Positions 39,701-57,200 of a stretch of DNA of 64,000 nucleotides are shown here, piece after piece; the stretch's first letter is position 1, and each line of letters starts with the position of its first letter. Location of the stretch: contig CDMY01000330.1 of assembly GCA_001179505.1 (NCBI GenBank), positions 54,125 through 118,124 on the forward strand, given 5' to 3'. Origin of the DNA: Vitrella brassicaformis CCMP3155. Lineage: Eukaryota > Protista > Chromerida. The translations under genes and the position numbers were made by a program. A model generated the notes under the pieces. It was not told the DNA's origin. It saw only the letters and a program-made list of their open reading frames with translations, and did not search any database.

Positions 39701-42530
39701 CCTCTCCTCTCTCCCCAGATCATGTCAAGCACACTCCCAATTTCGGCCCCTCACAGCAGCAGCAACAGCAGCAGCAACACAAGGCAGCAGAGCTTCCGGC
39801 CGCTTCGACGGCCAACAAGGGCATCCACTGCAGATGGGCGATCGGCAAACGCATTGGTGAGGGAGGGAGGGAGGGAGGGAGGGACTGCCCACACACCTTG
39901 TGAACGTATATGTCATGCGATGGATGTGTGTGTCACCTGCATGCCATGCAGGTGAGCTGTTGTTGTCCCCGCCTCTGTGCATGAACCGGATGGTCAACAG
40001 CGTGGGGGCCATCTGGCAGACGCTCTACATCAGCCTCGCCGCCAACTCGTACCCATACACACACACTCACACACACACACACACCTATCTCTGTCTTTGC
40101 TCCATCTGTGTGTCGTGCTGTTTGTTTGCTGTGTCAGGTTCCTGGTGTTTCAGTGCTACAGCCATCCCGTGGGGTCCTCGTCGCTCACGGCCTTCCCCTC
40201 TGTCATATGCGGGTCGAAACAATGGTATGCTTGGACAACCTGTGGGTCCGTGAGCGCATGTGTGTCTCCTTCTCTCTCTGTGTGTGTGTAGGTATAGGAT
40301 GATGCCTGTGGGCCTGTTTGGCATTGTGGTATACGTCCTGGGCTTCTTCGCTCTCATGACCTACCTCGTCAGGAGGGAGTGCACATCAGAAACCTGCTGG
40401 CGTGTGGATGTGCACACAATTGTGTGTGTGTGTGTGTGTGTGTGCAGATTCTCCTGTCGTATACGCCGCACAGGCACGGCACCACAGAGGGCTTCGAGAC
40501 CCGATGGAGATTCCTCTTCGGAAACTGGTACACACAAACACACAAACACACGCACACACACACTCCGGGGGATACATGCGTGTGTGCGGTTGCTGTCTCT
40601 GTGTGTGTCCAGGAAGCCCTCACGCAGATGGTGGTACGCAAAATTAGGGGGTGCACCCATGCGGACGAAGTATATGTGTGTGAGTATGGTCGTCCATAGG
40701 GCCCTAGTGTTTCTGCTGCGTGAGATGGTGGTCGCCCTGGTGCCTGTCCTGCTGCCCAATGGTACGGTGCGCACACACACATAGACTGGCCATGTGTGGT
40801 CTGACATGTGATGTGGTATCTGTCTGTCTGTCTGTCTGTGTGATTGGATTGTGCAGACGCGTATCTGCAGCTGTCTGTGGTGGTGATGCTGATGCTGTGT
40901 GTGCTGACCTTCCAGCTGCTCATGCAGCCCTGGCAAAACATATTCAACAACGTATGGACACACGTTAATCATTTGGTGACGCACACGTCCGTGTAGGTAT
41001 GTGATGTGCCTGTCAATCGGTCGGTCTATAGGTTCTGGACGCATCCATCATGGCGGCCTTCATCCTCATCGGTGCGCCACCACGCCACGCCCATTGCTGC
41101 GCCTATCATGTGTGTGTGTGTGTGTGTGTGTGTGCAGGTATGCACGCGACGTTTTTCTCTCCCCGAGAGGACAAGGACGCCAAATACTTCGCCACGGTGC
41201 TGGTGGTGAGCTGCGGCGTGGCCTTCTCCATCTGGGCGTCCGTCATGACTCTCAATGTCACCGGTCAGCCGGCCGGCCGGCCACTGCATGTCACCATCCC
41301 CGCATCTGCACTCATCGGTGTGTCTTGATTGGGTGTACGTACAGGTTTTTTCAACTCGACGGACTGCGGCCGTTCACAGCACCGTAAAATCCGCCGCAGC
41401 AAAGTGGTCGCCGCGCTCAGGAGAATACTCGAACGCATCGCTGGTCGGTCAATGAGGCAGGGAGGGAGGGAGGGACGCCTGAAAATGGTGCGTGCGTGTG
41501 TGTGCGTGCGTGTGTGTGCGTGCGTGTGTGTGCGTGTGTGTGTCTGCGTGTGTGTGTGTGTATCAGGTCCTCCCTCGCTGCAGTCGTCATCGTTTCTGCC
41601 CCCCCTGGATGGAAAGGACCGTGACAATGACACCAACACCAACGGGCAATCTATGTACCTGCTCAGCGATGACGTACGTGAGGAAGGAAAAACAAAAAGC
41701 CTCACACGTGTACCTACCTACCCATGGGTGTCTGTCGGTGAGGAGTGTTGTGTGTACACGACTGACTGACGTGTGTTGTGTGTTGTGTGTGTATAGGTGT
41801 GGCTGCCCTTTGAGCGTCGTCTGTCGCCTGATGACGTGGCCATCCTCCGGGTGGCCATACACCTGCTCCACAAGAAACTCATCAGGTCGGTCAGCGGGCA
41901 GGCAAGGCAACACAACACCAAGCCCTCCCACCCAACACGCATGACATGACACGTCCTGCCTGCCTGTCTGTCTGTGCACTCACTGTTTGCATGTCATGTA
42001 GGCAATCGAGCTCTTTGTCGCTGTCCCTCAATCACAACCGCTCCTCCACCACAGTGCTGCCGTCCTTCCACTCGTCGGGCTTCCTCGACACGCGCAACTC
42101 GTCCATGTCCTTCTCGTGGGCCGTCAAGCGAATGCAGCCACACATACGCAGGGCACGCTCACGGGTCGACTTGACCATTGAAGACGGAGACACCACCACG
42201 TGCGCAACTCACGAGCAGCAGCGGCATCATGGTGGGGAGAAGAAACACCACCACCACCAGCAGCAGCAGCAGCGGGAGGTTCCAGCGGGGTTTCGGCGAG
42301 CGTCATCGACTCTGCCAGTGTCATTGGCGAGAGAGCCCGAAGACACGGATGAGTCTGGGTGCGGTTCGGATGATGTGGCGAGCGAAGGGCTGGCTGTGTC
42401 GAATGCGCCGGCGGCACATCGACCACCACCACCACGGCCGCACCCACGCGGAGAGGATTGTTTGAGCGACACGGGTGAGTATGAGAGGGAGTGGCGGGAG
42501 GCCGTGTCGTGTGTGCTGGGAGTCAGGTGA
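33735..42530 (+). CDS. Large membrane receptor-like protein: signal peptide, putative periplasmic-binding-protein-like domain, Cys-rich (GCC2/3, TNFR-like) repeats and multi-TM domain
   Basis: MRGVSVALLLCLPSLALSQ; YFSEVWPS, MGPTGYAG, FDWWWPD; repeats such as CKPCDSG, CTPCPAG, CERCEYGHY, CIPCP, CTCLPGTY, CMTC; several hydrophobic exons at 38.2-41.3 kb; final exon ends at 42530. Confidence 0.75.
35881..36180. other. Assembly gap (300 N) inside the receptor gene
   Basis: Run of N. Confidence 1.
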
Positions 42531-42951
42531 ATATCAATGCGGCGAGTGTCGTGGGCGGACATACGTGTACATACGTACGTGTAGGTGTGCGTCGTTGTTT
42601 TGTACGTAAGACAGGTGTGGATAGATCTAGAGTGAGTGAGTAGGTCACTTTGATCACAAAGTGACTATCACTCTCTCTCAACGTGACAGCTGATTGACAT
42701 GGCTCCGTGTCGTCACTCGTGAAGCGACAAGCTTTAAGTAGATACAAGTGGAGTGGATGTCTGTACTGTACTGTACCATCTAGCTAGCTATTTATATACA
42801 AACAAGAGAAAGAGCACTGAGCCGACAGAAACAAAACCCGCGTACCGACCGTACCACGCGGTACGCATCATGATGTGTGGATGCATTCAATGCACACAAC
42901 ACCCACCCCCATCCCCACCTACTTGGACATTCACGCACGGGCACCGGCTAG

Positions 42952-44061
42952 CTACACCGAGTAAGTCTTCACGCGGCTCTGAATCCCACCCCTACAAATC
43001 GCGCACACCATCAGCTGGTCCGCACACCGCCCGCACACCATATGGCCGCACGGAACCAAACACACATCAGGCCGACGCATCAAGCATATTGGGCAACCCG
43101 GCGCGCCTTCCGGCAGCCTATCGCGGGAGCCAATCGAGTCGCTTGATGTTGCTGGCTGTGGGAGCGGGCCGACGTCCAAAACAACAGGTGCTGGCGGGGC
43201 AGAGGGAAGGGGGGTAGGGGCTTCCTGATCGGCTGAAAGAAAGAAAAACGGAAATATGGACAAATGAGGGAGGCGGTGGTTGAATCGTCGCTCACTCGTT
43301 CGGTCTTCTTGCTGAGCAGGCTCCTGTGGAGGAGTCTCGCGCCTGCAATGCACAGTGAGGCATTCCACGACTGTACTGAGCCCATGTCAAACTCCTTACT
43401 CCTTGGCCATGTGAAGGAAGCACAGGAAGACCACGATTGCAATGGCCACGTCAGTCACGATGGGCGAGTGGACGGCAAAGATCAGCCAGTCGCCAGACAT
43501 GAATGCCTGCATGCATTGAGAGAGGAGGGCACCCAGGCATCCATGGCCACCTAGGTCAGGTCATACTCTAGGTGCTGTGCTGCCGTACCCAGAGAAGTGC
43601 GTATCCGAAGAAGACCACCAACAGTCCCCACACAGACGCCGTATAGAATGCAATCACCCAGAAGAGCCATTTGATGAACCCCACGAGTCCAACAGAGCTT
43701 ACAATAATGAACAGAACGTTGACAATCAAGACAGTCACCAAACGACGCCACTGTGGAGACAAACGTACGGACAGATGGCGCACACACAGAGATCGTCCGT
43801 ATGTATGAGAGTGCGTGTTTGTGTGTTGATTCGTCACCCCATAGAGAAACAGAGCCAGCGCACACGAGCCGATCTGAAACAGCGCCGCCAGGATGCCAGC
43901 ATTGCGCCTGCCACGCAGACAGGACAGACACAACAGCCACCAGCACTCATCCGCGTGTGCGTGTACATGCGTCATGCAATTGTCTGCCTGGCTCACCATC
44001 TCTTGGACTCATTGGTGAGCTGGCGGGCGAGGGGGGGTGGTAGGCAGCGGGAGAAGAGCAT
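42952..44061 (-). CDS. Transmembrane RING-HC E3 ubiquitin ligase
   Basis: Hydrophobic exons (LVTVLIVNVLFIIVSSVGLVGFIKWLFWVIAFY...) and C-terminal CPICLMRRPDVCLVPCGHMVCGRCADQLMVCAIC. Confidence 0.85.
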
Positions 44062-44989
44062 ACTCGGGCTTCGCGAGGCAAACAGCCCTTCTCTCCGTGT
44101 CCTCTCATTGTTGTCTCTCGCCGGTGCGCCAACGTGTCTAGACGCTCTCGTCAACATTCCACGACGTCGTGCGCTCAACTGTGCTCCTTTTTAGATTGCG
44201 AGCTGCTGCAGGGCATCCCCGGATGGATCGTCGGCGAGCAAACAACAGCGCTTTCTCGAAGTGGCTGCTTCACCCGGTCCTTCGTGACGTTGCTGATATA
44301 TTTCTGCAGAAAAATCTGTCGTTCATTCATCCTCTCGATGCAGCCGGGGACTCTTGGTCTGAGTGTGCGTTTCGTTATACAGTGGTCTGCCAAGGGAGCT
44401 TCGTTTAATGTTGTACTGATACGCTGGTGTGCAGTTTAAATTTGCCGGTGAGCGCACAGCTGTGTCAATGCACTGTAGAGGAATGCACGGAAAAGATGTG
44501 CTCAAGGGGCCATGAAGGGAATCAGGAACAGAGAATAATGGTTTCACACGGAGACGTGTCAATCAGTGTGTGGGAATGCGATCTGGCACGGGCGCACAAC
44601 AGCAACTTCACGTCACAACCCCTGCTTCTCGACTGTGGCCGCCGACGTCGCATGATCGATCATTGATTGTCACATTCCATCCAATATAAAATGTAGACAG
44701 CGTGTGTGTCAAGAAACACCTATGGTAGTGGACTTTGTGTGGACGCCCTGCCGCCAAGTAAAACGACCCTTCCCTGGCTGCTTGTGCAGATGCAGGGCTC
44801 GTGTGGCGTCGATGAGCTTGACACCATGTTGCTCGGCTTCAGGTCAGTGTAGGCTATCCTGCATCCTCGACCTGCATGCATGGGTGCAAAGACACGTACG
44901 TATATATCCCTTTCCGTGCACGGATGCGTACCATATGATCGCCCTCATCAGTGTCCAGCAGGGCGGCAGACTGAGATCACCCACTCCCC

Positions 44990-45375
44990 ACCCTATGTGC
45001 AGCGCCTCGGCACTGATCATTTCGATCAGCTTCTGCCCCACCTTCTCGATTGCCTTCTTCAGACGACGGTCATTTGCTGACAGAAAAATAGATTTGCCGT
45101 CTTTGGCGAGGTTGCCGTCCTTTGTCAGCCGATAGAAGGTCCAAGTATACCCGTTCGTCAGGAGGCCCCGAGATACGCCGGTCATTTTCATAGTCCAGCA
45201 GCTGCACCTCCTCAGCCTCACCGAAGCAGCCGACCCTCTTCTTCTCTATGATAAATCGAATGACTCCATCCGCCAACAGGACGGCGTCCATGCGTCCAAA
45301 CAGCGACCGCTCGCTCTCGATGCCGTTTACGTCCTCTTCCCAGGCAGCACTCAAACGCGTTGAAGAATGGTACAT
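44990..45375 (-). pseudogene. Degenerate PD-(D/E)xK nuclease cassette D
   Basis: RMDAVLL...FIIEKK...VQLLDY, then a 2-nt loss near 45190 shifts the frame to MTGVSRGLLTNGYTWTFYRL. Confidence 0.75.
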
Positions 45376-45394
45376 GGCGTACAGAGGCCGACTT

Positions 45395-45603
45395 CCTCAA
45401 TGGCTTCCTTCAGGCTGGGGTCGTTCGCTGAAAAAAAAGAAAAAAAGATTCGACGTCTCTGACCAGGTCGCCGGTCCGACCGTGGCCGCGTTGTGTCAGC
45501 TGATAAGAAGTCCAAGTATACCCGTTCATCAGCACGCCTCGAGATACGCCGGTCATTTTCATACACTCCAATAGCTGCGCCTCTTGCTTGTCTCCAAAGC
45601 GGC
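45395..45603 (-). pseudogene. 5'-truncated nuclease cassette C
   Basis: RFGDKQEAQLLECMKMTGVSRGVLMNGYTWTSYQL...ANDPSLKEAIEEVG, split by a frameshift in a T run. Confidence 0.7.
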
Positions 45604-45904
45604 TAATACCTGGGTAGGTGACAGCACCGCACGCAGCTCCTGTAGCAACGAACAGAGCCGAGACACGAAAATGCAAACAGATTTGCATCAGCTCGCCCAC
45701 CTTGTCGACAGATTTTGATCTCGACCAACCCACATCAGCCGGGCGAAGCCGCAGTATCGCCGGGCTATCGCAGGGGCTATGCCGCAGTGCCGGGCAGCCT
45801 CAAGATTGAGATGCTCGTTGACCCCGATATACAGCTGCAGCACGCGGTCGTAGCGCCGACGCCAGCCAAGCTGCTTCGCCCAGCCAAGCGACTGCATAGA
45901 CATT

Positions 45905-46245
45905 TATCAGCTCTGCCCACTTTCGCAATGTCCTCCGCCAGATTTGGGTCGTCCGATGAGAGGACGGTGGGCCATCTTTGGCTTCCGCCAGACCTGGGTC
46001 GTTTGGCATGACCAGGCGATAAAACGTCCAAGTATAGCCATTCGTCAGCACTCCTCGAGAGCGCCCCCCTGACACCCCCGCCTCTTCCTATCTTGAAAGC
46101 GGCCGTCAGCCTTCGCCTCGATGATGAGGTGAATCATTACGTAATCATTTCGTCGACCAAGAATGCGTGGTCTATCTCCCCGAGCTGCTTCCGGTCTTGC
46201 ACGTGGTTCACATTTCTCGTTAAGGCACCGTCAAGTCGTGCAGAA
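45905..46245 (-). pseudogene. Degenerate nuclease cassette B
   Basis: SSARLDGALTRNVNHVQDRKQLGEIDHAFLVDEMIT* / LIIEAKADGRF / SRGVLTNGYTWTFYRL, with a stop and frameshifts. Confidence 0.75.
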
Positions 46246-46256
46246 GACTCACAGGA

Positions 46257-46338
46257 GCACGACAGAGGCAGCGCGACAGAGGCAGCACGACAAAGGCAGC
46301 CCGAGAACGGCAGCGCACTGGCAGCGCGACAGAGGCAG
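46257..46338. repeat. 14-bp minisatellite, about 6 units (GCVCGACAGAGGCA)
   Basis: gcacgacagaggca gcgcgacagaggca gcacgacaaaggca gcccgagaacggca gcgcactggca gcgcgacagaggca. Confidence 0.85.
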
Positions 46339-46345
46339 GTTCGCA

Positions 46346-47165
46346 TCAACAGCCCATCTCAGACTGCTCCATGATCATCTTCATCAGCTGTCTCCCCACT
46401 CGAGTTATGTTCTCTTCCAGATTCGGATCGTAGGGGTAGAGCACAATAGATGGGCCATCTTCTTCCAGATCTCCGTTCGTCAATCGATAGAATGTCCAAA
46501 CATATCCCTTGGTCAGGACTCCTCTAGACACCCCAGCCGTCATCAGATATTCTAGCAGCTGTACCTCCTCCTTGTCCCCAAAGCGGCCGCTCGCCTTGGC
46601 CTCGATAATCACGTGAATCACCTTGTCGACCAGCAGAACGTAGTCCATCTGTCCGAGCTGCGTCCGGTTCTGCATATTGCTCACGTTTCTCTGAAAGGCA
46701 TCTTCAAGTCGTGAAGAAGACCTATAGATACTCCGCAAGCATGCCTTCTGCAGCGGTCTAGTGAAGTGTGTGACCAGTGTGCGATAGGTCTGCCGCATCC
46801 ACTTGGCGATGTGATTGGATGGCTGCAAAGTCCCGTTCTTGAACGCCGTGTGTAGCTTAATCTTCTTATCCCACGTCAGAAGAAGCTCGTCATGACGCCA
46901 CACCAGGTTCTCGAGGGGGATGGCCGACAGGTATAGCAGAGGAAGCAAAAAGAGATGCTCTTTCGGTGGACGCCTACTTTCAAGCCACGGCATCTCCCTC
47001 CAGTATGAATGCAGCCGGGTTGTCGATGTCTGTTGCCGCATAAACCTCTCCCTCGAGCCCGGCGGCCATGAACATCGGCCCTCTCTCATCGACCAAGACC
47101 ACCTTAAACGCCCTCGACCTTGAGAGCCGCTCTCCTTCAAGTTGGCCCGGCGGTTCGTCTGACAT
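46346..47165 (-). CDS. HsdR-N/RecB-type PD-(D/E)xK nuclease-domain protein (cassette A; N-terminus needs a short intron or a frameshift)
   Basis: Open frame with GQMDYVLL, VIIEAK, VQLLEY (QxxxY), GVLTKGYVWTFYRL. The track's start at 47278 is TTG; the nearest likely ATG (47165) is in another frame. Confidence 0.65.
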
Positions 47166-47810
47166 ACTCGCGTCTCATCTCCAGGGCGATGACAATCGAT
47201 GACAATGGATGCTGGTGTAGTCAGCGCCGCAAATGATTGCTGCGCTGCCCCTCGTCGTCTTTGCTCTTTTTTCCGCAACCCCCGTCTCAGAAATTCAGAA
47301 TTCTCGACACGCTCACACCGACACGCTCACACCGAGTTGGTTGATATATTTGCGTGACTTTTCAAAACCACCAGGAAACGGCCAGCGAATGTGTACATAT
47401 GGATCCAAATATGTCAGTCACGGCAGTGACAATGGAGAGATGAAACGTGTGAACATTCGCTCTTTGTACCTCCCTCCGCCCTGATGCTCCCTCTTGTCGA
47501 CGACGCCCTCACGTGCACTGAAACGCTGACTGAAGAGCATCTCAGTGACCGTCAAAGCACCGTCTACGAGGAAGGATCAGACGTAGAGGATCAACGATCA
47601 CGGGATCAACGTCAACGCACACATCATCAACACAACGACCACACGGAAAAAGTTCACTCTCATATTAGCCAGCCACTGCCAACAGACACGACAAGGTGGA
47701 CATGCCGGCAGACGAGTCGACTGAAGGCCCTCCCGTACTGTACAAAACCTCCCGCCTCCCATGTGCACTATCAAAACTCAGTCATGCAGTCCCCCGTTGC
47801 CCATGGAGCG

Positions 47811-48237
47811 TCACTTGCTCCTGACGGTGCAGCGACCGGCAAGCACCGACCCAACCATGCCTCCTGCAGCCAATGCGCCACCTGCCTCAGCGCCAAGCAC
47901 AACCGAACCTGCGCAAAAGGCCACACAGACACACATTCACTCAGACAAACACACTCGCCACAATGCAGAGGCCCCTTCTCCCTTGCTCCTCACCTCCAGC
48001 AGAGAACGGCGCCATGGCGATTCCCAGCCCAACAGCCGTGATGCCCAGGAAGCCGACCATTGCTGCTTGCAGCCTTTCCACAGTGGTGCACTGGCGGAAA
48101 CTGTGCGGGCAGGACGGGTCGTCTGCTCTGCATTCGTCGTGCATGTCGCGCTTCAGCACCAGCTCACTGCACCAAGAGGGAAGGGGGCCAAACAGGAGAG
48201 GAAGCAGGCCGAGCGCCACGAGAACGGAAACCCGCAT
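47811..48237 (-). CDS. Small (113 aa) secreted or membrane protein with an ApoL-like / glycine-zipper hydrophobic segment
   Basis: Exon 1 is 48237-47994, intron GTGAGG...GCGCAG, exon 2 is 47908-47811. Protein: signal peptide, 3 Cys, then VGFLGITAVGLGIAMAPFSAGGSVVLGAEAGGALAAGGMVGSVLAG. Confidence 0.6.
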
Positions 48238-48733
48238 GCTCGCCCGCGGAAACTGCTGCGTCGGCCGGCGTTCTCCTTGGCGTCCTCCTCACGGCGTCGA
48301 GCTACCTTGACGGCGAGCGGGCTTCACGTTCACCTCAGCTGGCAGCGACTTGGAGGAGAGCCGCCGAGAGGTTTCAATGCGCCTCGAGGGGATAGAAATG
48401 CGCTCGGTTCAGCTCCTTCGCACGCCCTTTCCTCCCTTCTCGCTCTCCGATCCGCCGCATCTTGCGAGCTTGAAAAGGACCTGGCGGTTGGCGCGCGGAA
48501 AGGGGAAGGAGGCACGCGAGGAGGAAAGAAGTCGACGGACGAACAGGAACACTCTCCCCGAAGATCTTCGCCTCCTCGCTGCTAGGTCTTCCTACTGCTC
48601 TGCGACATCTCCTACTGCTGTTGTCGCCGGTCCGTCAAGAGCGCAGAAGTGTCTTGGTGACGTGTAAGTCAGCTCAATCAGCGTACCGACCCGCACATCT
48701 GTTCGTGGGCGGAGGAGAGGTCTCTGTGGTGTC

Positions 48734-50402
48734 ATGCCGCCCAGCGACTGTGCGGTTGTGCCGAAGGAGGCCTTCAACAAGTGCAATGCCCTCATCACCG
48801 AGTGAGCCACACACGCACCGCAAACTGACACGACGAGAGAGGCGTCAAAACGCTCGGCGTGTTCTACTGTGTTAACAATACAGGGCGATGCAGTGTTCGG
48901 GTAAGCTGCTGGACGTGATAGGCCAAGTGAGCCGTGAGTTCACCCCGCTGCTGGGCCACTTCACCGACATAACCAACGAGTATGCGGCGCAGCAAGCCAA
49001 GCTGCGGCAGATACAGGGGGTCTTCATGGACGACTGCCGCTCACCGAGGGTGGGCGACAAACGGCGGCGTGTGACGGGGCCGGACAGGGACGACCACACA
49101 TCTCGTGACGGCGCCGACAAGACTCAGGTGAGAGGAAGAGCTTAAGGCCTGAGCACCAGTGCCTTCCTTGCCTTGCATCTCGTGGCATTCGCTTCTGTCC
49201 TCTGTGTTAGGGCACTGGTCACTCGTCGGTGTTCGGACCGTCGGTGGCCACCGCGCCATCCGTGACGGCACCCGCCATCCACCCCGCCCCCATGGCCATG
49301 GACACCCAGCCCGGTGGACCCACACCGGCTACCACAAGCACCAGCAGCAGCACGAGCAGCGCCCCGCCCAGGTCGGCTGGCAAGGTCAAAAGCGAGGACA
49401 AGTCGCCCCAGAGTGCGTCGAGCGGCCAGCCCATCAAGCAGGACGACCCCCAGCCCCCCTCATCGCCCCACGCGCCGCGACAGGCCAAGGCCAAGGCCGA
49501 CCACACAGCTGGCGTCAAGAAAGAGGACGCCAAGAAGAAAAAGAAGCGCGTCAAAGGCGACAAGGACAAGGACAGAGCGGCCGCTGGTGGGACACGCACC
49601 AGCAGCGGCAATGGCAATGGTGGGACAGCCAAGCCTGGGACGCAACAGCAGCAGGACAGTGACGATGATGTCCTCCCGCGGTCGACCAAGAGGGGTGGCT
49701 CAGGAAGGCGGGGAGCGCGGGCTGCCAGCAAGAGGGACAAGGACGTGACAGACGAGGAGGGAGAGGGCGACGACACATGCGTCAAGGGCGAGAATGGCGC
49801 CGACGCATCATGTGTCAAGAGGGACAAGGCGGAGGGTGGTGAGGCGCCTGCCGTCAAGGAGGAGCCCACAGCGGCAGACATCGGCAACGAGGGCAAGGGC
49901 AGCCCATCTGTGGCCGTGACGGTGACACCTCCCCCCGCCCCATGGAGCGAGGCAGCCGTCTTGGAGCAGATGGGCACATACAGGGAGCGACTCACCCAAC
50001 TGCATGGCGCTGAGGTAGGGACCTACACCAGCCATACACACGAACACACACATCCATCCATACGCTCGCCGTTGTTTGTCAGTCGTACAACGAGTGTCTG
50101 TCGGTGTTGGGCGAGGTGGAATCTCTGTGTGGCCGCACCGACACGAACCTGCTCATCAGTCCCCTGCAGACGTCCAACCTGGGACCCACGCTCGGCAAAC
50201 ACCTCAAGAAATCGCCAAACCCACAGGTGCGTACGCATGGCAACAGGACATTCTCGCGCCCGCAGCCATATGTCGTGTGATGCCGTGGTCTGTCTGTCTG
50301 TCAGGTTGCGAGTCGTGCAGCGTCGATCGTCAAGGCCCTGAAGGAGCGCATCACAGCTATCCAGACCATCCAGACGGCACCGGCACCCCCCGCGCCATCT
50401 AA
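48734..50402 (+). CDS. TFIIS N-terminal (LW/Med26-like) helical-domain protein with a long low-complexity linker
   Basis: The last exons splice to ...LISPLQTSNLGPTLGKHLKKSPNPQVASRAASIVKALKERI, matching the TFIIS-N pattern (T.LG..V..L.K...P.VA..A..IV). Confidence 0.65.
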
Positions 50403-52836: not shown

Positions 52837-54287
52837 AGGACACAAGCGCCTTCAATCACTGGAGGCATTGCGGCGGCTAAAGAGTACAGCGAGTGGGTTA
52901 CATTTTTTGACGTACGTCACCAGCGTGACCGTGATTTGCCACACACACACACACGACTGGCCCAACACTGACTGACATGGCCACCAATCCGCCCTCCTGT
53001 TGCCTACACCTCTCTCTCTCTCTCTCTCTCTGCCTCTCGGCAATGGCTGCCGTCATTTTTACTCCTCTCTCTCTCCCTGGCTCCTCTCCACACACAGGTG
53101 TATGTATGCGTGTGTGTGGCTGTCTGTCTGTCTGTCTGTGTATGTGTCTGTAAGTATTAATGCAATGCATGTCTATCTAAGCCAACTCACTCCATCTATA
53201 ATTCTCTGACTGACTGAGGCATTATTGCATTTTTGGGGTGATCGATCTTTCTAGTTGTGTGTATGCATGTACATGTCTGTCATGATGGCTGCCTGTCTCT
53301 CTGGCCATCCGCCATCCTTTGTGCCTGCCTGACTGTATGTGTGTGTGTGTACGTGTGTGTGTATACTCTCATACCTTGTATATACTAGTTCAGTCATGTT
53401 TGCTGCAGACAGACAGAGAGGGGGGAAGGGAGGGAGGGAGGGAGGGAAGGAGGGTCTGTCTGCATGCCTACATCCCAAACATGTGAGTGGCTTTCTGCAA
53501 GCAGCCTGTCACTCACTCACTCATGTGCCCACTTCACACACGACGGTCGGGCGACCGACCCACTGACCCCTAGATGACAGTGCATATATGGCCGGCCTTT
53601 TACGTCCGTATTGACTGACTGACTGACGGATTGATCGATCGCACGGGAGCGATGCACGATAGACAGACGGTCTGTACGCCATTTATTGGAGAGAGATGCA
53701 TATATGCATGACACACACCTGCATTTGTCCATGCATTCCGAAAGCAACGACAGGGTGGTGGGTTTGTTGACGCGGCGGATGCGTCCGTCCGTCCGTCCGT
53801 CCAAGCAATGACATTCATTCATTCATTACTCATGCCGCTCGCTCGTGCCTTTAGCTATCGCTGGTTTTTTGTACCGCAATGCATTAATGCCATTCCATGA
53901 CTCCTATCTCGGCGGCCAGATCGACTGGCCGCTCGTGGGTGTGCCCACGAGTCGATCAGTCAGAGACCTGCAATGCCATGCATGAGTGTGTGTATCTACC
54001 GATGCGGCCACGACTGGATATTATCCGTGTGCTGTGCATGTGTTATCTCATGTGACGTGCAATGCAATCGTGTGTGTTTTATCAGTGATGGATGGATGGA
54101 TGGATCTGGGTGAGTGGACATCCGCCATACACCAGCTGACCACTGTCTGTCTAAGGCTTTGCCGGACCGACCTGTCAGAGGCACAGTGCCAACAGAGCTG
54201 CGGAGCCGCGCCCCCACAACACCCCCATACTGAGCTCGCGTCACTGTGTTCCCCTCCCCCTCCCTGTGTGTGTTCTCCCCCGCCACC

Positions 54288-57200
54288 ATGTCCACGTTTC
54301 GGTCCACGGTCGCCAACAACCTCATCAACAGCGATTTCCCCATCGAGGAGCTCATGAAGAGCACAGACACCGACACCACTGGCAATATGCAAGGCTCCTC
54401 CCCGCGCCACAGGGGCGCCGCTGCCTCCCCCGGGGCGGACCACTCCGGGACGCCCTCTGTGCACGTGACCACCCCCACTGGCACCAGCCAGTCCCAGTCC
54501 ACCAGCCCCACAACAAAAACACTCACGCTGGACCTGCCGGAGGATGCCGAAGCAGCGGGCAAGAGCATCAAGACGGTGAATGAGGAGACAGTGCGGCGCC
54601 CAACGCTCTTCCAGTCACTGGCTGCGTCGCTGTCGCGCAAGTCGCTGCGTCCGAAGGACAAGGAGGAGACTCCCAGCGCCGCCATGGACCTGAGGACGCT
54701 GCAGACCAAGTGGCTGGCCATCGATGACGGCGGGAGTGTGGTCATGATCAACCCCAAGGCCGCCTGGAAGATCTGCTGGGACATCCTCATCTTGGCGCTC
54801 GACTTCTTCTGCTACTTCGTGACGCCCATTGCGCTGATCTACGAAGGCGACGCCGGCACGGTCTTCCGCCCGCTGCCCAGGCACTTCGACCCCGTCGGGC
54901 TGCTCATCGACGTCGTCTTCCTGGCAGACATCGCTCTGACCTTCTTTACGATAAGTCTGGACTCGTCGGTGTCTCTGGCAGCCCACCGATACAACTACTG
55001 CCGGTTCTGGCTGTGGCTCCACCTGACCTCAGTGCTGCCATCGGCCTTCCTCCCGGCCTTCAGGCTGCTGCGGGTGTTCGACCTGTTTCGCCTGTGGCAG
55101 CACTTCCGGTGGCTGCTGAAGAGCAGCGGGAACGTGTTCTTGTACCTGTTGGTACGGCTGGCGGCCTCGCTGCTGCTGATGGGGCTGATGCTGCACTTGT
55201 TCGGGTCATTCTGGATGGTCCTGGGGCTGAATGAGCGGGGCAGCTGGATCGACGGGTTCGACACAATGGTGAGACAGAGAGTGAGAGTGAGAGAGAGACA
55301 GAGACACGAGCGGGTGGGGTGGCGTGTGCAGATCCGCAAGGACGAGATTGTCAACCAGATGACGTACGCCTACTACTTCATGATGACGCTCTTCACGACC
55401 GGTACATGCCATGCACAGATGTAGCACAGCACCTGCAATTACTCCACGGTCCGTCCCTTCCTGCATACCATTCCTGCCTTTAGTTGGCTACGGCGAGATC
55501 TTCCCCAAGACGATCGTCGAGTACTGGTTCGCCTTGTTCAGCCAGATATGCGGGCTGCTGCTGGTGGGGTACCTGGTGGCGGTGTGCACGTCCATCGTGC
55601 TGGCCATGGGACAAGACTCATTCAACCCACCTGAGTTTAAACTCAAACAGGTATGGATGTATCTATCGATGAATGAATGAATGAACGAGTTAGTCAATGA
55701 CAAAAACACACAAAGTCAACCACACGTGTGTGTGTGCCGTTTGTGCAGGAGCTGATCTACTGGCTGTCACAGTTTGGCACCAACATCACTCAGGCACACA
55801 ACGACACACACACACGCACACATATAGGCACTGTCACATCCATCCATCCATCCATGTCTGTCTCCATTGGCCAACCAGGAAGAGAGCCAGGAGGTGTTGT
55901 GGTACTTCAAGCGGCCAGGCGAGGGATACAAGTACCTCAGGGACCAGAAGTCATCGCCCCTCCTGCACTCATTCTTCTCCCACCTGCCGCCATCCGTCCG
56001 CATGAAGTTGGCAGTGGCCGTCTACGGCGACTTTGTCGACAAATTTGAAGCCTTTCTCGAGGTGGGTGGGTGACCAAACGAAGAGACACCACAAGTCGGC
56101 TGGCTGCATCCATCCATCCATCCATGTATGGGCGGCATTGCGTGTGTGTAGGCGATAGATGCGACTGATGGATTTGTGGAGGACCTGCTTCTCAACCTCC
56201 ACCAACGATACTACCGCATGAAAAAAGGTACACACGCAAGCCAATTCATCGTCGGAATCTCCCTCTCAAGCAATGGGTGGATGTGTGTGTGTGGTCGGTG
56301 CAGATGGCGATGCAGTGGTGGTCGTGCCGCTGGGCGAGCAGCTGCGGGAGGTGATATTCCTCACCGAAGGAATCGCACTCGTCACCGGTAAGAGGGAGAC
56401 AGTGAGACACAGATGGACTCTGTCTGCTCCGTCCCCCACTCACTTATTTCTTACCCCCTTTTGTTTTCAGCTGAGAATGCTGAGGAGACACAGAAGGGTC
56501 TGCAGGTGGAGGGCGGCTTCTGGTTCGGGGGACACCAGTGCACAGAGGAGTACCACCCGTCACCCATACAAGTGGAGGCACTCGACCCCAACCAATCCAT
56601 CGTCGCGCACTGTGAGTGATACATGTGATAGAGGGGAATCGCATCGCCCACGTCCATGGCGTGTGTGTGTACGGGTTTCTGTCTGATTCTGTCTATTTAT
56701 TGTGTGTGGTCAGATATCGACATGTGGAAGTGGCGTGCGGTGCTCGAGCGCCACCCCACCGTGGCCAGAAACATAATCGAGCTCTCAAAGAAACAAACGA
56801 TAGTATATGAATCACTCCACTGAGAAACCTCCATCCACACCAACTCAATGACCCTTCATCTTTCTCATCTCTCTCAGGCGATTTTGCAGAATTTGAAGGT
56901 GCCCGAGCCGACCCGCTACACATGCGGGGTTTGCCTGCTGCAGTGCTTCCGTGATGGCTTGGGAATGGCCGGTATGGGCGTGTCGCTGCCCTTCCCAGTC
57001 ACCATCCCGGTGCAGAAGGTCGTCAAGGAAGAGACACAGAAACCAGGAGAAGAACCAGGTCAGCCGGATGAGAGAGAGACATGGCGGGAAGGGAAGGCCC
57101 ATGTCCCTTTCTTCTCTCTGAAGGCACGAAGGTCGAAGCTGCCATTGGTGCTGGAGAAACTGATCAGGCTGCTGTGGCACAAGCCCTCACCGCCACCGGC

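Follow-up and report, generated by a model that had tools for sequence, protein, structure and literature searches.

Nuclease domains of the HsdR-N type (Pfam HSDR_N, PF04313, and HSDR_N_2, PF13588) occur in bacteria and archaea, both stand-alone and as parts of fusions, under the annotations 'restriction endonuclease subunit R' and 'predicted type IV restriction endonuclease'. Polymorphic-toxin loci combine a large delivery protein and one immunity gene per module with different toxin tips joined at a conserved recombination junction. In silent-cassette conversion (pilE/pilS, vlsE, msp2), open cassettes have long flanks that are identical to those of the expression site. Crinkler restriction-endonuclease-like (REase) effectors of eukaryotes have a C-terminal PD-(D/E)xK domain preceded by an N-terminal region that is not catalytic, and RAP is an REase-like RNA-binding domain expanded in alveolates. 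Here we analyzed an array of HsdR-N-type domains in the nuclear genome of Vitrella brassicaformis CCMP3155 (72.7 Mb, 1064 contigs). It lies in a stretch of 64,000 nucleotides (positions 54125-118124 of contig C330, CDMY01000330.1), referred to as the window, where the minus strand of 44990-47000 holds four head-to-tail copies (A, B, C and D) of one unit of about 115 codons.

The locus is probably best explained as a lineage-specific, transferred stand-alone nuclease gene within a tandem family that evolves by birth and death, and not as a cassette or diversification device. Copy A (46346-46993, minus strand) is an intact open frame of 215 codons. Its predicted protein (P0001) is identical to the one present in public collections, which belongs to an annotated Vitrella brassicaformis gene with its start at 46993. 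The frame encodes the motifs MDYV (D117), IEAK (E131, K133), QLLEY (Q145, Y149) and GVLTKGYVWTFY (pattern GVLTKGxxWTFY). The PD-(D/E)xK domain of HsdR-N type, identified with Pfam, hhalign, AlphaFold (AF2) and VIA-align, spans residues ~86-212. It is preceded by a lineage-specific leader (residues 1-85) with which it forms a single contiguous frame lacking an intron. Copy A is most likely a stand-alone gene for a small nuclease domain of the HsdR-N type, and since the full D..ExK..QxxxY set is kept, its product would probably be a metal-dependent DNA nuclease that, like other proteins of this fold, binds Mg2+ and cuts DNA.

A repeat search of the DNA detected a 48-nt core four times, with spacings of 371, 516 and 468 nt, together with larger pairwise blocks. 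When the protein of copy A was compared with the whole genome, the self-match (E 4.8e-145) was accompanied by five further pieces with E-values from 1.9e-11 to 6e-3, the best of them at 1.9e-11, 6.2e-10, 1.5e-8 and 8.7e-6. All of them are located inside the array, and no match was obtained outside it in the 72.7 Mb. Since this search matched no other locus, the array is unique to one place in the genome. Searches of the genome with Pfam families likewise gave HSDR_N-like matches at the array only. The repeat is thus real, far beyond chance and confined to a single place. A preliminary description of this DNA, made from the letters alone and correct in its view of the host as an alveolate, had listed four copies on one strand. 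It had reported D, ExK, QxxxY and the string G.LT.G..W.FY as preserved in A, and B, C and D as diverged and broken. The genome search and the four cores on the minus strand, the translation of 46346-46993 and the stops, frame-breaking indels and deletions found in the other copies agree with this description. The similar arrays elsewhere that it had considered were not encountered in the genome-wide search.

The sequence of the locus was further checked by re-assembly of three read sets (SRR505714, ERR558200 and ERR558149). Each of them shows 100% colinearity with the window; the spans covered are 46310-47812, 42070-48375 and 44016-48375. A 2-nt deletion in copy D is present in both re-assemblies that cover this copy. 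As the lesions are reproduced, they are not errors of the reference assembly.

At the level of sequence families and of fold, copy A was confirmed to have the PD-(D/E)xK nuclease fold of the HsdR-N type and to be homologous to the bacterial and archaeal HSDR_N and HSDR_N_2 domains. Only families of the PD-(D/E)xK clan matched it in Pfam (HSDR_N, E 2.1e-4; PDDEXK_3, 3.1e-4; Cas4; HSDR_N_2). NCBIfam returned GxxExxY, PADLOC Cas4/PD_DExK and PHROGs an endonuclease (1.2e-6). Alignment by hhalign of a profile of the Vitrella copies with 30 bacterial and archaeal HSDR_N proteins gave a probability of 97.4% with an E-value of 9.8e-12 over A residues 110-209. D117, E131, K133, Q145 and Y149 of copy A occupy invariant or near-invariant columns of the alignment, and the motif string vDY.L ... 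IEAK ... QLL.Y ... VLTnG..W.FY is common to A and its bacterial relatives.

A sequence search of the PDB with copy A gave nothing, and the PDB matches of the family profile were discarded as they were limited to SeqA-C, a bacterial C-terminal domain that A does not have. The mean pLDDT of the AF2 model was 37 when only the single sequence was used; with an alignment of 49 sequences it reached 76-94 for residues 111-212. The top Foldseek rows for this model were all proteins of the restriction fold, with weak E-values. VIA-align superimposed it on the nuclease domain of BpuSI (residues 19-170) with a Z-score of 10.5 over 130 aligned residues, on a Vibrio HsdR fragment (residues 25-158) with 8.2, on DrdV with 7.9 and on HsdR of EcoR124I with 6.0. 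In the ESM Atlas, clusters of HSDR_N proteins were listed by features and by structure. The HsdR-type nuclease proposed in the preliminary description is therefore borne out by the profile alignment (97.4%) and by the two highest Z-scores, and a structural match to the PD-(D/E)xK fold, on which that proposal had been made to depend, was found. RAP was absent among the Pfam matches to A at E <= 1, and RAP-containing and other mitochondrial-ribosome chains were mid-rank fold matches only (Z 6-7 in VIA-align). The R subunit of a type I restriction enzyme was also considered and rejected: the 215-residue product of A is devoid of an SF2 helicase motor, and a second HSDR_N-like locus is missing from the genome, HsdM and HsdS not having been searched for.

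Where the domain comes from was addressed by searching for relatives of copy A. A word-index protein search retrieved A itself only, and an exhaustive phmmer search among 1.84 billion representatives gave 12 matches with E <= 1e-3. The genuine ones (P0003 and P0006 to P0012) are all prokaryotic, and one match is the annotated piece of copy D. Two proteins, a 4092-residue chitin-binding protein of a beetle matched in seven stretches (P0004) and a 1415-residue TPR/NTPase repeat protein (P0005), were rejected as spurious repeat matches. P0003, P0006 and P0008 to P0012 pass their own HSDR_N or HSDR_N_2 cut-offs. P0007, the best match, does not, and no Pfam family matched it at E <= 0.01. With 143 residues it is one of the short bacterial HsdR-N members to which A is similar in size. 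It is encoded next to recA and rmuC on a bacterial contig; a tandem domain array at this site was considered and rejected since the contig holds only one copy.

Homologues of the domain in eukaryotes beyond Vitrella were not detected by the exhaustive search. Because all detectable relatives are bacterial or archaeal and none was found in other eukaryotes, the Vitrella lineage most likely acquired the gene by horizontal transfer. The 118-kb contig is of ordinary Vitrella composition and contains an ion-channel ORF; with relatives that are prokaryotic, transfer followed by local duplication would be the simplest account. The ion-channel family Ion_trans was the sole Pfam match among the neighbouring long ORFs, and there is therefore no sign of a larger bacterial insert. 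Scans with degenerate patterns gave no relatives in GTDB genomes, hence no named donor, and none in IMG/VR, hence no viral link.

Compared with the bacterial HsdR-N proteins, copy A shares the motif string, the profile match of 97.4% and the fold of the nuclease domains of HsdR, BpuSI and DrdV. It differs from them in being encoded on a eukaryotic nuclear contig, in its novel leader of 85 residues and in scores below the Pfam cut-offs. In A, the first helix that is usually present (E..TK...L..LGW) cannot be recognised, and the helicase, SeqA-C, DUF4357 and EVE partner domains are missing. The kind of nuclease is a known one of which the member described here is eukaryotic, its counterpart in other eukaryotes not having been found among the representatives searched. 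Some of the prokaryotic relatives, all metagenomic (P0003, P0006 and P0008), contain a tandem pair of HSDR_N-type domains in a single polypeptide, so that duplication of this domain has recurred independently. In P0006 the tandem domains follow an EVE-domain match that stays below threshold (19.9 bits, cut-off 23).

The remaining three copies are broken to different degrees. The unit starts at one common residue in A, B and D (RSSSRL, ESSARL and HSSTRL, respectively), and only A has an upstream region, of ~85 codons. The shared start and the restriction of the upstream region to A had been noticed in the preliminary description. Copy B (~45905-46270, minus strand) is a pseudogene with an A-like 5' half (~74% nucleotide identity). 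It contains an 11-nt tandem duplication at 46132-46153 and a 16-nt deletion that takes out the QLLEY sequence of the QxxxY segment. The frame is also disrupted by smaller indels (1, 2 and 8 nt) and by two in-frame stops, a TAA and a TGA. Of the unit, copy C (45387-45601, minus strand), the sister of D, retains just the 3' half (RFGDKQEAQLLEC...WTSYQL...DPSLKEAIEEVG). The motifs appear in it as QLLEC and WTSY; an in-frame insertion is present, and the frame is lost at an A/T run (45432-45448). B and C are dead fragments which cannot encode a whole domain.

Copy D (45003-45384, minus strand) is a complete domain unit from HSSTRL to the C-terminal helix with an ATG of its own at 45375. It aligns to A residues 86-211 with 52% amino-acid identity and retains MDAV, IEKK and QLLD. 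Its single lesion is the 2-nt deletion at ~45191, in the codon matching Y149, so that the reading frame changes between the QxxxY helix and GVSRG. The 3' half of D past the frameshift corresponds to an annotated Vitrella brassicaformis protein of 93 residues (CEM02592.1, P0002), which is most likely an annotated pseudogene fragment. The annotation of CEM02592.1 includes a GT-AG intron of ~60 nt (44872-44931, minus strand) in its non-homologous tail.

The history of the copies was approached through their pairwise divergence. Overall nucleotide identity between A and the other copies is 54-65%. In windows of 40 columns, B is nearest to A in the 5' half (69-76%) and C nearest to D in the 3' half (65-88%), and A and D are 47-77% identical. 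For A and D, compared over 122 codons, dN is 0.40 and dS 1.7, giving a dN/dS of 0.23 (bootstrap 95% 0.12-0.45), a ratio that is rough as dS is saturated. The two copies are identical at 68% of codon positions 1 and 2 and at 44% of position 3. If D had been neutral since the duplication and A constrained, a dN/dS near 0.5-0.6 would be expected; 0.55 is reached by 0.4% of the bootstrap replicates. The ratio of 0.23 and the rarity of replicates of at least 0.55 argue, within the roughness of this ratio, that D or the common ancestor of C and D was under selection as a coding gene during most of its existence and was broken recently. For C and D (47 codons) the values are dN 0.26, dS 0.49 and dN/dS 0.54, given as a point estimate with no bootstrap. 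The 5' halves of A and B (35 codons) give dN 0.30, dS 0.45 and dN/dS 0.66 (bootstrap 95% 0.25-1.99). B and C are younger, decaying by-products.

A sequence of events can be proposed in which the domain-coding unit (A residues ~86-200) was duplicated in tandem. An old duplication would have given rise to an A-type gene with the 85-residue leader and to a leaderless D-type gene, and purifying selection would have maintained both over a long period. B and C would stem from subsequent duplications or unequal crossovers that produced B, with its A-like 5' half, and C, with its D-like 3' half; both would have died, and D would have been inactivated recently by the 2-nt deletion. With other birth-and-death tandem families the array shares head-to-tail duplicates of differing ages, mosaic copies attributable to unequal crossover, a junction occupied by a minisatellite and stepwise pseudogenisation. 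It differs from the usual families in that the duplicated unit is sub-genic and domain-sized; otherwise nothing essential differs.

Several points weigh against a transferred and selectively maintained nuclease gene. The nuclease activity of A is predicted from conserved residues alone, and its expression is assumed for a gene predicted from DNA. All Pfam cut-offs are missed by A, HSDR_N with 21.6 of 25.1 bits, HSDR_N_2 with 13.8 of 25 and PDDEXK_3 with 21.5 of 22. Residues 1-110 of the model are of low confidence, and the saturated dS bears on the argument for a long-selected D. As to a donor, the best match, P0007, is 38% identical to A over 88 residues. With a best match of this kind, old vertical descent with loss elsewhere would be the alternative to transfer.

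A further and rather doubtful possibility goes beyond a transferred gene in decay. A prokaryotic HsdR-N nuclease might have been domesticated in a chromerid, with one paralogue carrying a leader and a selected paralogue without it, as an organelle-directed or antiviral system. The leader is of interest in this context. It contains a hydrophobic segment of 14 residues (14-27) and an acidic patch (28-42), followed at residues 43-96 by a basic, S/T-rich stretch of 54 residues with 12 K+R, 3 H and 0 D+E. In composition it resembles the bipartite targeting signals of complex-plastid algae, or a signal of the organelle type. Pfam and the exhaustive phmmer search gave no family match for the leader, and the ESM Atlas nothing usable. 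In the window, the leader-type region corresponds to 46706-46993 (minus strand; A residues 1-96).

Somewhat less probable still is an old eukaryotic or plastid-endosymbiont-derived nuclease, retained only in Vitrella, in which the leader would serve organelle targeting and A would act on organelle DNA. The charge of residues 43-96 and their position after a hydrophobic segment would fit this idea, but the acidic patch separates the two parts of the leader, and other plastid-bearing eukaryotes have no homologue among the representatives searched. The neighbours of A by features in the Atlas are for the most part HSDR_N clusters from cyanobacteria, similar to it in length; these are a lead only, as the taxon labels of the Atlas are explicitly no evidence of origin.

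It is very unlikely that D is still functional, either with its deletion bypassed or with its halves as separate products, so that two active nuclease genes would exist. The A to D ratio of 0.23 points to long constraint, D, ExK and the whole C-terminal half are kept in this copy, and a part of it is annotated as a gene. However, the deletion interrupts the fold after the QxxxY helix and before the fourth strand, both re-assemblies spanning D contain it, and no shift-prone signal was seen. Our reading of D as a formerly selected, now inactivated copy takes the constraint as a trace of the past.

The preliminary description had compared the layout with polymorphic-toxin loci followed by orphan cassettes and had thought of a diversifying effector. 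In this case B, C and D would be stored modules that replace the C-terminal nuclease of A by recombination or gene conversion, in a polymorphic-toxin-like or silent-cassette arrangement. The arrangement of a full gene with 5'-truncated modules behind it on the same strand, sharing a junction, is also that of the bacterial CdiA-CT/CdiI and Rhs orphan arrays. As in pilE/pilS, vlsE and msp2, one expression copy stands beside promoterless partial copies, and the mosaic structure of B with its A-like 5' half indicates some exchange or unequal crossover within the array. In contrast to the toxin loci, however, the modules are copies of one conserved catalytic core instead of differing tips with alternative toxin folds. 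A delivery or repeat region is lacking: A has 215 residues, and no non-nuclease Pfam family was found at E 0.1 on its 310-codon frame. Immunity-sized ORFs between the units are absent, as the gaps leave no room for them.

The modules are moreover broken, B and C by stops, frameshifts and deletions of catalytic motifs, and are too diverged to recombine. The longest exact matches to A are 11 nt in B, 12 nt in C and 10 nt in D, which differs from the long identical flanks of silent cassettes. With an identity of 54-65% and exact tracts of 10-12 nt, homologous exchange at present is implausible. The dN/dS values below 1 and the absence of a second such array from the Vitrella genome likewise speak against stored modules. 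The idea is largely refuted and has next to no probability left. The ratios below 1, the short exact tracts and the multiple lesions in B and C likewise fail to support a diversifying effector. Like the Crinkler REase effectors, copy A encodes a eukaryotic protein in which a non-catalytic N-terminal region precedes the PD-(D/E)xK domain, and one unnamed Mucoromycota cluster (TM 0.63) appears in the structure list of the Atlas. Its sequence relatives, in contrast, are prokaryotic HSDR_N proteins and not CR-REase families, and a Crinkler header on the 310-codon frame of A was not matched in Pfam at E <= 1.

Alternative terminal exons, in which a leader transcript of A is spliced to domain exons of A, B, C or D, are hardly credible: an AG stands immediately 5' of the shared unit start TCTTC...CGACTTGA in A and B and the public annotation places a spliced gene of 93 residues on the 3' half of D, but B and C are unable to yield a whole domain, D has its own ATG and no AG at the matching place, and the domain of A is joined to the leader in one intronless open frame.

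With the array read as a tandem family founded by one transferred gene, the locus provides an intact nuclear gene with a prokaryote-type HsdR-N domain in a photosynthetic relative of the apicomplexans. It would be a clean small case of local spread of a transferred gene, through tandem duplication of a sub-genic segment, with decay as the next stage, and from the pattern of substitutions it can be seen that two paralogues long remained useful. No new diversification or effector system is opened by these results. The value of the locus lies mainly in annotation, to which it adds three pseudogenes, including one that is in part listed as a protein. Copy A is also a candidate for a role of such nucleases in organelle DNA handling or defence in chromerids. 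Should the domestication mentioned above hold true, the outcome would be a lineage-specific organelle-directed or antiviral nuclease system beyond a mere decaying transfer.

The span given in the preliminary description extended to 47165. Its account of the array was right, but A starts at 46993, and 47165 is the start of a separate ORF of 61 codons (46980-47165, minus strand) in a frame other than that of A, which overlaps the ATG of A by 14 nt. The GC content of this ORF by codon position is coding-like (0.69/0.44/0.66), that of the frame of A upstream of its ATG is not (0.53/0.62/0.57). No Pfam family matched the ORF, and none of the enumerated GT-AG joins to the frame of A has a convincing acceptor. 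An upstream ORF, a lost exon and a chance frame are all conceivable.

The junctions between the copies differ from each other. Between A and B, ~78 nt are filled by a minisatellite (46256-46338) of ~6 copies of the 14-nt unit AGCGCGACAGAGGC, a motif that also forms an array of ~800 nt on contig C761 (15791-16597) of the same genome. Between C and D lie 2 nt. B and C are separated by a unique spacer of ~310 nt (45602-45904) in the place of the missing 5' half of C. It holds an ORF of 71 codons (45688-45903, minus strand) for which neither a Pfam match nor a second copy in the genome was found.

An Rfam scan of 42000-50000 gave no matches, and towards the end of the contig neither a telomeric nor another large tandem repeat was found. 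The ion-channel ORF (54246-55421, plus strand; Ion_trans, E 9.7e-10) is a eukaryote-type exon ~7 kb from the array, with a GC content at third codon positions (GC3) of 0.86 as compared to ~0.65 in copy A. The flanks contain no genome-wide repeats except for the minisatellite and one match of 86 nt just downstream of copy D (44740-44826), which is 78% identical to positions 24078-24162 of contig C560.

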